From sequence record MH791398.1: DNA of 64,000 nt. One strand, 5' to 3'. The notes under the pieces were generated by a model. It saw only the letters and a program-made list of their open reading frames with translations. It did no database searches and had not been told where the DNA came from. Position numbers and translations under genes: made by a program. Positions 5,315-9,370 of this stretch are shown one piece after another (position 1 is the first letter of the stretch; each line of letters starts with the position of its first letter).

Positions 5315-6166
5315 TTATTTCTTCATTACCATAGCCCATGTTTCTGGGTTTGGAATATAATCAGAAATCTTATTCACAATCTGTTTATCAAGTTCAGTTG
5401 CTTTCATCGGAGCTTTACCCTGTTGTTTAACTCTTATGTAGTTTGCTTCTTTAACATAAGAACCACCTTTACCAGATTTAGCAATAGAAGAGTCAACACC
5501 AATTTTATTGAATGCAATATACCAATCACCATCGGCATAACTCCGGGCACCTTCACCCATAGCCATTAGGTTTTTGAAGGTCATACTTGCACCCTCATGG
5601 GTTGCAACAAGAATTTCAACCGGTACAGTACGGGAACGTTCGGCGTTTTGTTTCATAGCAACGTTGATATCATTCATCACCCACACGATATGAACGTTTT
5701 CCTTGTTATAACCTAGTTCACGAACCTGTTTTGCAATTTGAGCCATCTTACCCATATCTTTAAGGGTAACGTCAAAGATCAAATTAGGTTTACGATCCTC
5801 TGGTGCAGCCAATACACCATTAAAAACACGTTTATCCATGTTCTTGGTTGTCTTGTATACATCAGATAGAAGGCTATGCAGAGTAGAAACGTTTTCTGGC
5901 TTCTTCAAGTCAAACTTGGATATATCGTGCCCGGTTTCTGCTTTAATGCGTCCAGCGAGCTTTGTGGAAGCCATAGCAAGCTCTTTTACACGGTCTACGT
6001 CTAGGGTAATACCTTCCAGACCAACTAGTTTAGAAGTAACAAATCCCTTTCCTGAACCGGCCCCACCAGCCAAGATCAAGACGTTGTTAAACTTAGGATA
6101 TGCCTTCTTTCCGAATACCATCAATTTTTCTTCCAATTGAACGAATTCACTAAATTTCATTTTCAT
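5315..6166 (-). CDS. P-loop kinase (zeta-toxin/AAA_33-like)
   Basis: LAGGAGSGKG Walker A, IFDVT, lid motif QNAERSRTVP. Confidence 0.7.
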   Translation of the reverse strand: MKMKFSEFVQLEEKLMVFGKKAYPKFNNVLILAGGAGSGKGFVTSKLVGLEGITLDVDRVKELAMASTKLAGRIKAETGHDISKFDLKKPENVSTLHSLLSDVYKTTKNMDKRVFNGVLAAPEDRKPNLIFDVTLKDMGKMAQIAKQVRELGYNKENVHIVWVMNDINVAMKQNAERSRTVPVEILVATHEGASMTFKNLMAMGEGARSYADGDWYIAFNKIGVDSSIAKSGKGGSYVKEANYIRVKQQGKAPMKATELDKQIVNKISDYIPNPETWAMVMKK

Positions 6167-6529: not shown

Positions 6530-6931
6530 TTATTTGAAACGTTTTACCTTGTAGATCACCAGCTTAATGAACTCCAATGAATCCTCAAGTGCGTTTAAAG
6601 TTCCTTTAAACTCTGGTTTTCCATCAAGTAACTCAGCCAACTCAGAGCCGTTGTCGTAAAGTCCCTGTAACACACTCAGAGCGTCGTCTGACGCAACTTC
6701 AAAGTGGTTGTATACCAACTCGATGTCGTTAGCCAAGGCGCTCTCTGCAACCGAATCTAGGTAGTCATCTGGGAATTCCTTATAGAACTCATCAAGTGCC
6801 ATATGGAGCGCATAATTGTTGGTTGTAAGATGGAGATAGTGGATCTTTGCAACCGTCTTTAATCCAAGAGTCACAAATCTAGATACTCTATCTGAGATTC
6901 GTTTCATATCATATTTATAAGCTATTTTCAT
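6530..6931 (-). CDS. Ferritin/Dps-like four-helix protein (DUF5856-like)
   Basis: HYLHLTTNNYALHMALDEFY...DYLDSVAES resembles the Dps ferroxidase H...D...E pattern. Confidence 0.65.
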   Translation of the reverse strand: MKIAYKYDMKRISDRVSRFVTLGLKTVAKIHYLHLTTNNYALHMALDEFYKEFPDDYLDSVAESALANDIELVYNHFEVASDDALSVLQGLYDNGSELAELLDGKPEFKGTLNALEDSLEFIKLVIYKVKRFK

Positions 6932-7759: not shown

Positions 7760-7945
7760 TTAAAGACTACGAATAATCGACATAGCAATCAAAACGGGCC
7801 AAATTGCTGATACAGAAAGATAATCCATAACTTCTTTAAAAGTAGGGGTCCTATCCTCTTCTCGGTCTTGATGATCGGTAATCCCAAATGCGGTAATGAA
7901 TACCAGAACACCAATCAAATACACAATAAAAATTCCAGTCAACAT
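7760..7945 (-). CDS. Small membrane protein with two hydrophobic segments
   Basis: GIFIVYLIGVLVFITAFGI and LSVSAIWPVLIAMSII; GGAG RBS. Confidence 0.65.
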   Translation of the reverse strand: MLTGIFIVYLIGVLVFITAFGITDHQDREEDRTPTFKEVMDYLSVSAIWPVLIAMSIIRSL

Positions 7946-7961
7946 ATCAAATTCTCCGTTA

Positions 7962-8210
7962 ATAAAAAGAAAAACGGGGACTATATCAAGCCAGTCAAAG
8001 CAAGATAAAGTCCCCGTTGCCGAACGTTGTCTTTGGTGTCAGACAACAACCTTGTGATAGTGGTAGGTCACACCACCCTCTTTAAAACGGGGACCATAAT
8101 CGAGGCAATATGGTCTCTTTTCGTCTAGTGACAATACAGGGTATCACCTTTACCCTTGACTCGTATTGTTTGACGCCGCTGCGCCACTCTTGGGGCGCGT
8201 ACACTTTAAA
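7962..8210 (-). ncRNA. Candidate structured RNA / attenuator ending in an intrinsic terminator
   Basis: No sense-strand ORF; at least 6 hairpins; terminal 10-bp stem plus U-tract. Confidence 0.55.
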
Positions 8211-8213
8211 ATC

Positions 8214-8465
8214 TTAACTATATTGATAACCGGCGTTAGCCTTTTTCATTTCGTAATCATCATCAACAAAAACATCGTGATTACCGTGCATGATATCATG
8301 TTTCAATTTACGATCTCGCTGACGACTCAATGTATTATAACGATCTTTGACACCCGATTCTGGATAACTAGGATATTTATCTCCCAGATCCCGATTCACT
8401 TTAAGTTCATCACCATACCAACTGTCCAGATGTTTTTCATTTTTACGACGAAATGTCTTACCCAT
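8214..8465 (-). CDS. Hypothetical basic protein
   Basis: 83 aa ORF starting MGKTFRRK with a GGA RBS. Confidence 0.65.
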   Translation of the reverse strand: MGKTFRRKNEKHLDSWYGDELKVNRDLGDKYPSYPESGVKDRYNTLSRQRDRKLKHDIMHGNHDVFVDDDYEMKKANAGYQYS

Positions 8466-9294: not shown

Positions 9295-9370
9295 TGGAGC
9301 CGGGTGTGGGACTCAAACCCACGACCTACGGATTACAAGACCGTCGCTCTATCAACTGAGCTAACCCGGC
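9295..9370 (-). tRNA. trnT: tRNA-Thr(UGU)
   Basis: Cloverleaf, anticodon loop CTTGTAA, encoded CCA. Confidence 0.93.

Follow-up and report, generated by a model that had tools for sequence, protein, structure and literature searches.

Why T4 encodes RNAC and RNAD is still unexplained after fifty years. The two RNAs, also called species 1 and 2 stable RNAs, are small and noncoding, and their genes lie at the far end of the tRNA region, on the same strand as the tRNAs (PMC3014915, PMC9697503). As of a 2010 review, no riboswitch or trans-acting regulatory RNA of T4 had been functionally characterized (PMC3014915). ROOL and GOLLD are likewise phage-encoded RNAs that are heavily pseudoknotted, often lie near tRNA islands and have no known protein partner (PMC12286853). 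Here, we describe an RNA element in MH791398.1, of which a stretch of 64,000 nucleotides was analyzed (the window, to which all coordinates refer). The element lies on the minus strand, as do all features placed below, and occupies positions 7961 to 8211, 251 nt from an AU-rich leader to the end of a U-tract, with each segment checked against the sequence. Like RNAC and RNAD, it is a small noncoding RNA that shares the strand of the tRNAs and lies distal to them, and its length is close to that of RNAC and RNAD combined (119 plus 139 nt). Unlike in T4, about 1.1 kb with three small ORFs lies between the last tRNA and the element, and whereas RNAC ends in a tRNA-like T-arm and acceptor, the element ends in an intrinsic terminator. 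Homology to RNAC and RNAD was rejected, as MAFFT gave no meaningful alignment and a covariance model of the 5' domain (R1) found no match in the T4 tRNA region. With ROOL and GOLLD, the element shares a phage origin, an ornate pseudoknotted structure and proximity to a tRNA island, and it adds another case to the recurring association of ornate phage RNAs with tRNA clusters. The element is about 240 nt, however, and many GOLLD RNAs exceed 800 nt (PMC12286853).

The source phage is a T4-like Aeromonas phage (Straboviridae, Emmerichvirinae, Ceceduovirus). Identity over the 1.2 kb around the element is 99.5 to 100% with Asswx_1, Aszh-1, AS-zj and ten further records, 96.6% with CC2, which is also a Ceceduovirus (Straboviridae; Emmerichvirinae), and about 76% with phage 65 (Ishigurovirus). 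The minus strand carries ten tRNA genes between positions 9295 and 11667, and the order of tRNA cluster, small ORFs and RNA is kept in all lineages. Immediately upstream, an 83-amino-acid ORF (8214 to 8465; phrog_1774) has its stop codon 3 nt ahead of the leader. Downstream, a Shine-Dalgarno sequence (GGAG) sits just past the U-tract and serves a 61-amino-acid ORF (7760 to 7945; phrog_16872). All PHROG matches of the flanking ORFs are to families of unknown function. Two of three lineages, that of Ceceduovirus and that of phage 65, have the 61-amino-acid ORF behind the RNA, with its start about 15 nt past the U-tract. In Aswh_1 and ZPAH1, the ORF is missing, and the RNA is followed by a spacer of 140 nt that contains a second hairpin resembling a terminator.

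The element was found by blastn in 21 Aeromonas phage records and nowhere else, and the neighboring 184-amino-acid gene is present in exactly these 21. The records fall into three lineages, one with the phage of the window (the window phage) and CC2, one with phage 65, 65.2, avDM6 and a metagenomic contig, and one with Aswh_1 and ZPAH1. The RNA of 13 records is 100% identical to that of the window phage. CC2 follows at 97.7%, the phage 65 group at about 76%, and Aswh_1 and ZPAH1 at about 75%. Searches of IMG/VR with the exact 17-mer and two gapped block patterns returned three known phage genomes and two chance matches in coding sequence, and a JGI metagenome scan returned one phage-65-like contig (L013, the metagenomic member of the second lineage) and one chance match. 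A scan of bacterial (GTDB) genomes gave eight chance matches, none of which was confirmed by the covariance model. Model R1 matched neither the tRNA region of Aeromonas phage Aeh1 nor that of phiAS5, and it found nothing beside distant homologs of the 83-amino-acid gene in unrelated phages. Within a subfamily of jumbo Aeromonas phages, no sequenced member lacks the element, and several of these phages are studied as aquaculture therapeutics.

The sequence-only reading that pointed to the locus took the RNA to be undescribed, and so it appears in Rfam and in the literature, where we found no description of it. Searches of the 7-kb neighborhood against Rfam 15 gave no match at an E value of ≤1. 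When the element itself was searched in three lineages at E ≤ 10, the matches were weak, mutually inconsistent and all below 20 bits, and the classes left unmatched include riboswitches, ribozymes, T-box, group I intron, tmRNA, RNase P, 6S, ROOL and GOLLD. We conclude that the element is a new structured-RNA family that is confined to the Emmerichvirinae. Two likenesses deserve mention. The sequences AGAGGGUGGUGUGACC and AGAGGGUGGUG bear a superficial resemblance to the T-box sequence, tRNA genes are adjacent and the RNA ends in a terminator. A T-box requires UGGN to pair with the tRNA end, however, and here GGUGGU is an arm of a covarying hairpin (P4, below) that reads GGUAGU in phage 65 and GAUGGA in Aswh_1, such that UGGN is lost; Rfam gave no T-box match. 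Moreover, GAUAUAGUCC resembles the S element of group I introns, and a group I intron-like core was rejected because Rfam gave no match, exons are lacking and the helix order differs.

How firmly the element is established as RNA depends on comparison between lineages more than on folding energy. The predicted minimum free energy of the minus-strand RNA is -88.9 kcal/mol, compared to -67.5 ± 4.6 for shuffled sequences (z = -4.67), which agrees with the proposal, made on the window alone, of a structured RNA of about 250 nt that ends in an intrinsic terminator; covariation proved decisive for it. The plus strand likewise folds well (z = -4.09), and the strand was therefore called on other evidence. 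RNA of the minus strand contains many G-U pairs and no A-C mispairs, a U-tract lies 3' of the last hairpin on the minus strand only, and the tRNAs and flanking genes are also on the minus strand. Stop codons occur in all six frames, 2 to 7 in each, in every lineage, and there is no conserved ORF. Thus, the element combines compensatory covariation on one strand with the lack of a conserved frame, as is generally asked of a structured noncoding RNA.

Covariation was counted after hand segmentation into helices and loops, and the segments were confirmed to rebuild the real sequences. In a hand-checked alignment of 47 positions (helices P1 to P5 and the junction-closing helix PJ), 23 were compensatory, 2 were changed on one side, 20 were invariant and 2 were mispaired in one lineage. 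The sequence-only reading had staked its proposal on covarying homologs, and these exist: in the alignment that also includes the pseudoknots (A8), 28 of 76 pairs changed on both sides, compared to 11.6 ± 2.4 in shuffles, none of 500 of which reached 28. When pairing partners were slid by 1 to 3 columns, the double changes fell to between 2 and 10. Standard pairs formed in 95% of cells, compared to 84.5 ± 1.1% in shuffles, and a separate count from a covariance-model alignment of the 5' domain agreed. Even the close pair of the window phage and CC2 is informative. They differ at 6 of 251 positions, and four of these make up two compensatory pairs, C-G to U-A in P3 and U-A to C-G in P5, while the other two are a G-C to G-U change in P2b and a change at an unpaired position. 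Moreover, the RNA retains invariant blocks of 14 and 17 nt, while protein identity between the window phage and Aswh_1 falls to 31% for the 83-amino-acid ORF and 35% for the 184-amino-acid ORF. Judged by these comparisons, the element is a structured RNA under strong selection, much stronger than that on the neighboring proteins.

The 5' domain is built around a three-way junction. The leader, UUUUAAAGUGUAC (8199 to 8211), reads UUUUAAGUGUA in relatives, where a mini-ORF runs into it with its last codons and stop, and it is a candidate processing site or 5' end. P1 follows as the hairpin GCGCC/GGCGC (8198-8194/8185-8181) with a variable loop; 4 of its 5 positions are compensatory, and it becomes GGGGU/ACCCC in phage 65 and GUCCCG/CGGGAC in Aswh_1. 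The junction is closed by PJ, in which AGCGG (8176 to 8180) pairs with CCGUU (8086 to 8090), the latter within the upstream copy GUCCCCGUUUU of a repeat (8084 to 8094). The PJ pairing is possible in all lineages, with G-U changed to A-U in Aswh_1, and appears in the minimum-free-energy fold of the flank-trimmed RNA of the window phage, CC2 and Aswh_1, although by duplex energy alone shuffled sequences do equally well. The P2 arm (8122 to 8175) has an invariant CGUC/GACG helix and an equally invariant internal loop, AA/CACUA, and is paired in 100% of cells. It continues into P2a, ACAAUAC/GUAUUGU (8169-8163/8137-8131), with four compensatory positions, a 6-nt bulge, GAGUCA (8157 to 8162), and P2b, AGGGUA/UACCCU (8156-8151/8143-8138), with three compensatory positions and the loop AAGGUGA (8144 to 8150). 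The junction core (8116 to 8130; J2, the P2 3' strand and J3) is identical in all lineages and forms most of the 17-nt block GUCACUAGACGAAAAGA, which begins with GU, the final two bases of the P2a 3' strand (8132-8131). That block and CA(G/A)CGGCGUCAAAC, which is invariant save for its one G/A position, are the most conserved parts of the RNA. The strand between P2 and P3 is AAAAGA, and P3 itself (8092 to 8115) is the hairpin GACCAUA(U)/(U)UAUGGUC (GACCAUA/UAUGGUC at 8115-8109/8098-8092), which is compensatory at 3 to 4 positions, the C-G to U-A change in CC2 among them.

The 3' domain consists of three hairpins, the last of which has the form of an intrinsic terminator. P4, GUGGU/ACCAC (8076-8072/8064-8060), has the loop GUGACCU and two compensatory positions, and reads GUAGU/ACUAC in phage 65 and AUGG/CCAU in Aswh_1. 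P5, GUUGUCU/AGACAAC (8047-8041/8032-8026), has the loop GACACCAA, and six of its seven pairs are compensatory, including the U-A to C-G change between the window phage and CC2. P6, AACGGGGACU.UAUC ... GAUA.AGUCCCCGUU, spans 7973 to 8018 (arms at 8018-8009 and 7982-7973), with an apical helix GC/GC and an 8-nt apical loop, UUUGACUG (7992 to 7999). Its stem is G+C rich, with the base CGGGG/CCCCG, and is followed by UUUUUCUUUUU, part of a U-tract, UUUUUCUUUUUAUU, at 7961 to 7974, as expected of an intrinsic terminator; a simple terminator scanner missed it, the loop limit being 8 nt. The arm-to-arm duplex is worth -21 to -28.5 kcal/mol, and the hairpin has a U-rich tail in every lineage. In Aswh_1, the stem sequence is wholly different, GGGCAUACG/CGUAUGCCC, and the stem is kept. 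Between the window phage and phage 65, by contrast, P6 is identical at 46 of 47 nt. A MotA-type middle promoter was rejected as the cause of this near identity, as its consensus had 0 matches where about 2 were expected, and a looser MotA pattern matched 4 times in the window, compared to 4.2 expected, with no enrichment.

The two domains are tied together by pseudoknots. The unpaired segments were searched exhaustively for complementary runs of 4 nt or more that occur in all three lineages, and 18 segment pairs qualified, compared to 7.2 ± 2.3 in independent shuffles, a figure that is inflated by invariant sequences. For this reason, we accepted only the three pairings that covary. In the first, PK-A, the P2 bulge sequence AGUCA (8157-8161) pairs with UGACU of the P6 apical loop (7993-7997); it is 100% paired, and in Aswh_1 it becomes AGCCG/UGGCU by a compensatory U-A to C-G change and an A-U to G-U change. 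In PK-B, CCUC of the P3 loop (8102-8105) pairs with GAGG (8077-8080), the segment after CCGUU, and a compensatory U-A to C-G change gives CCCC/GGGG in Aswh_1. RNAalifold run on raw MAFFT alignments instead paired AAGAGG with the U-tract, which we regard as an artifact, since GAGG has its covarying partner in the P3 loop. In PK-D, GACCU of the P4 loop (8065-8069) pairs with AGGUU just before P5 (8048-8052); it is 100% paired and becomes GACCC/GGGUU in Aswh_1, again by compensation. Each of the three is 95 to 100% paired and, there being three independent lineages, has one compensatory event behind it. As an alternative assignment, L3 may pair with J7. Two further pairings are possible, GGUG of the P2b loop with CACC of the P5 loop and AGUG of the leader with CACU of J2, and as both partners are invariant in each case, covariation is silent on them. 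Because the P6 apical loop covaries with the P2 bulge, the terminator hairpin is an integral part of the fold and not an appendage. The sequence-only fold had listed the stems correctly, and a script found each hairpin, the terminator and the duplicated 11-mer where they had been placed on the minus strand, but that fold lacked the pseudoknots, the PJ helix AGCGG/CCGUU and the part played by the terminator loop.

Beyond the helices, pseudoknots, conservation, noncoding nature and terminator-like end that these comparisons establish, we favor, with middling confidence, a discrete and compact RNA that takes its 3' end from its own terminator and acts by its shape, whether as a binder of protein or ligand or as a self-assembling unit. 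The minus-strand RNA would be a noncoding species of about 240 nt folded into one body. In the 5' domain, P1 would stack outside a three-way junction of AGCGG/CCGUU, the P2-P2a-P2b arm and P3; P4, P5 and the long P6 would form the 3' domain; and at least three pseudoknots (P3 loop with GAGG, P4 loop with AGGUU and P2 bulge with P6 apical loop) would hold the two together. P6 would then have a double role, as the Rho-independent terminator that sets the 3' end and as a structural element docked on P2. The RNA would probably be released as a stable species, with its 3' end generated by termination and its 5' end either by cleavage of the upstream mRNA in the conserved AU-rich leader UUUUAAAG or by initiation nearby. 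Action would presumably be in trans and through three-dimensional shape, by binding of a protein or small ligand or by self-assembly. We suggest shape and not an antisense mechanism because internal pairing takes up nearly all of the conserved loops, so that no seed is left free. A length of about 240 nt suits chemical probing, crystallography and cryo-EM, and as the hosts can be cultured, function is directly testable.

How the element might control transcription was the subject of the sequence-only reading, which proposed a riboswitch-like attenuator acting in cis, a proposal that we consider tenable but doubtful. In the terminating state, PJ and P3 would be folded, perhaps stabilized by a ligand or protein, CCCGUU would be sequestered and P6 would terminate transcription. 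In the read-through state, the 5' domain would be unfolded, GUCCCCGUU would pair with AACGGGGAC, and polymerase would proceed into the 61-amino-acid ORF and beyond. The 11-mer on which this rests, AAAACGGGGAC, occurs exactly twice in the 64 kb, at 7971-7981 on the terminator side and at 8084-8094 upstream, compared to 0.02 occurrences expected, and, as had been noticed, the upstream copy shares bases with the 3' arm of the GACCAUA hairpin. In the window phage, the upstream copy is the best partner of the terminator 5' arm in the whole upstream RNA, and the duplex of -18.0 kcal/mol is better than 99.7% of those with shuffled upstream sequence (P = 0.003). When the transcript was ended before the terminator 3' arm, the expected number of antiterminator pairs was 5.5 to 6.9 in the window phage (5.55), CC2 (6.39) and phage 65 (6.92); the helix dominates the predicted ensemble in the window phage and forms in three of the four phages tested. 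Moreover, the fold is as complex as that of an aptamer, and a Shine-Dalgarno sequence and ORF follow closely behind the U-tract. With the ORF starting that close to the U-tract in two of three lineages, some read-through is required, which fits a regulatory role. The layout is also that of the usual OFF switch, in which the 3' strand of the junction-closing helix doubles as the antiterminator strand, and in the window phage the 3' strand of PJ has an alternative partner in the 5' arm of the terminator, as in terminator-type riboswitches. On energetic grounds, the antiterminator alternative is physically plausible in that phage.

The alternative helix is not conserved, however. Its best duplex weakens to -14.0 kcal/mol in CC2 (fraction of shuffles at least as good, 0.023), -11.9 in phage 65 (0.41) and -8.6 in Aswh_1 (0.65), and in Aswh_1 the expected number of antiterminator pairs is 0.00. 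The compensatory change in CC2 preserves P3 at the cost of one antiterminator pair. In Aswh_1, the terminator arms have covaried only with each other, and CCGUU is still complementary to A(G/A)CGG only. Aswh_1 and ZPAH1 also lack the 61-amino-acid ORF that would be regulated and have instead the second terminator-like hairpin, while the RNA is whole, so the class of downstream gene is not constant. As the antiterminator and the 61-amino-acid ORF are both gone in this lineage and the whole fold is kept, the RNA must act there without the switch. Furthermore, about 100 nt and two conserved hairpins separate the antiterminator strands, the families of the downstream genes suggest no ligand, and no riboswitch model matches. 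Unlike in terminator-type riboswitches, the stem of the terminator is long and of high stability (-21 to -28 kcal/mol); its loop, moreover, is used in the fold. Attenuation by a ribosome finds no leader ORF to act on in the window phage or CC2, and in the Ishigurovirus relatives, which have an ORF of 8 to 10 codons that stops 5 nt ahead of P1, we found no alternative helix in which P1 takes part. The three-state switch of the sequence-only reading therefore survives as a plausible device of the window phage, weaker in CC2 and phage 65 and absent in Aswh_1 and ZPAH1, and not as conserved logic. A read-through switch is at most a lineage-specific overlay on the conserved function of the element, and as such it may tune read-through into the small downstream ORFs. 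We note that one prediction speaks against a wholly stand-alone RNA, as the nascent-transcript ensemble favors the antiterminator-like helix in the lineages with the downstream ORF.

Perhaps, the element is a sensing RNA. A junction bound by ligand or protein could capture the apical loop of its own terminator through the P2 bulge and P6 loop and thereby set how much transcription leaves the tRNA and early region. In cobalamin riboswitches, a kissing loop joins the aptamer to the expression platform, and the element resembles that type in its tertiary pairing between a would-be sensing domain and an expression-platform hairpin. We think such a device unlikely, and if it were real it would be a new class in T4-type phages and the first riboswitch-like device described in the group. 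In a related reading, an RNA-only assembly of the ROOL and GOLLD kind, at a quarter of their size, would be driven by the complementary conserved loops.

Alternatively, the element might have no function of its own and simply decorate the end of an operon, as a terminator joined to a cap that resists 3' exonucleases and stabilizes the upstream early mRNA with its small ORFs after the tRNA cluster. The element directly follows the stop codon of the 83-amino-acid ORF and has a strong terminator at its 3' end. Its own promoter is not evident either, as sigma-70 matches directly upstream are at chance level and none is conserved, and for want of a convincing promoter the RNA may be the 3' untranslated region of the 83-amino-acid gene. 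A single hairpin would suffice for that purpose, however, and the element goes far beyond the need with its eight helices, its three pseudoknots and its two invariant junction sequences, one of 14 and one of 17 nt. Moreover, the fold is kept while the gene it would protect drifts to 31% identity, and homologs of the 83-amino-acid gene in other phages lack the element. We consider an operon end of this kind quite improbable.

In principle, the element might instead be catalytic, for example self-cleaving, or assemble itself into an RNA-only particle, in the service of RNA processing or sequestration close to the tRNA region. Compact folds with several pseudoknots and invariant junction nucleotides are typical of ribozymes, and the conserved loops GGUG and CACC could pair between molecules as well as within one. 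ROOL and GOLLD, which lie near tRNA islands, form homo-oligomeric cages (PMC12286853). Neither a ribozyme nor ROOL or GOLLD was matched in Rfam even at E ≤ 10, however, and the element is much smaller than either of the latter. ROOL alone is several hundred nucleotides long, and we regard catalysis or a particle as very improbable. Finally, a protein-coding sequence or a DNA-level signal, such as an origin, a packaging site or a promoter array, can be dismissed as extremely improbable, because although ORFs of 31 to 40 amino acids can be drawn in the window and the opposite strand also folds well, stops occur in every frame of every lineage and no ORF is conserved, MotA boxes are not enriched, sigma-70-like matches are at chance, and the substitutions are pairwise compensatory with G-U pairs that are specific to one strand.

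A mini-ORF that has a Shine-Dalgarno site of its own separates the 83-aa gene from the conserved structured RNA in the Ishigurovirus relatives. Its carriers are phage 65 (L002:3236-3268, minus strand), Aswh_1 (L004:1449-1475, plus strand), avDM6, 65.2, ZPAH1 and the phage-65-like metagenomic contig L013. The encoded peptide is MYREENEGWF*, MIREEDWF* or MFREEDWF*. The Arg codon varies among AGA, CGC and CGT, a variation that points to selection at the peptide level. Moreover, the UAA stop is located 5 nt upstream of P1, the first hairpin of the RNA, and overlaps the conserved leader UGGUUUUAAG. The mini-ORF could couple translation to RNA folding. The mini-ORF is absent from the window at 8199-8216, and either it was lost from the window phage and its close relative CC2 or it was never present in them.

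The 3' end of the 83-aa ORF is itself conserved. The final codons of the ORF (G-Y-Q-Y), GGUUAUCAAUA (8221-8231, minus strand), are nucleotide identical in all three lineages, although the window phage and Aswh_1 versions of the 83-aa protein share only 31% identity. GGUUAUCAAUA may be part of the RNA or its processing signal. Alternatively, the identity may reflect a conserved C terminus combined with biased codon use. In Aeromonas phage 1233, a 290-nt gap (L023:2743-3032, plus strand) separates a distantly related homologue of the 83-aa gene from an NMN adenylyltransferase/PnuC pair. For this gap, Rfam returned nothing above noise (RAGATH-18, 20.6 bits, E = 0.33), and R1, the covariance model of the 5' domain of the RNA, did not hit it.

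The window phage and phage 65 share 46 of 47 nt in the terminator hairpin P6 (7973-8018, minus strand), whereas all their other helices have diverged. In Aswh_1, P6 retains only the 8-nt apical loop. Testing led to rejection of an embedded MotA-type promoter as the cause of P6 conservation.

A 283-aa protein (5315-6166, minus strand; phrog_5268, function unknown) is encoded five genes downstream of the RNA and contains a P-loop kinase-like region (Pfam Zeta_toxin, 2.2e-07; weak AAA_33). The gene at 6530-6931 (minus strand) encodes a 133-aa DUF5856/"starvation-inducible transcriptional regulator" (phrog_858). It also adjoins the tRNA cluster of phages Aeh1 and phiAS5 (T4 rI.-1/mobD.6 relatives), and therefore the neighborhood is anciently syntenic. 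The RNA was not found at that syntenic phrog_858/tRNA-cluster neighborhood in Aeh1 or phiAS5. Finally, a spacer of ~140 nt replaces the downstream 61-aa ORF in Aswh_1 (L004:1722-1861, plus strand) and in the equivalent region of ZPAH1 (L005). At the end of the spacer, immediately before the next gene, is a second hairpin resembling a terminator, GGGCUAG-GGAA-CUAGCCC, with UUUAUU after it.
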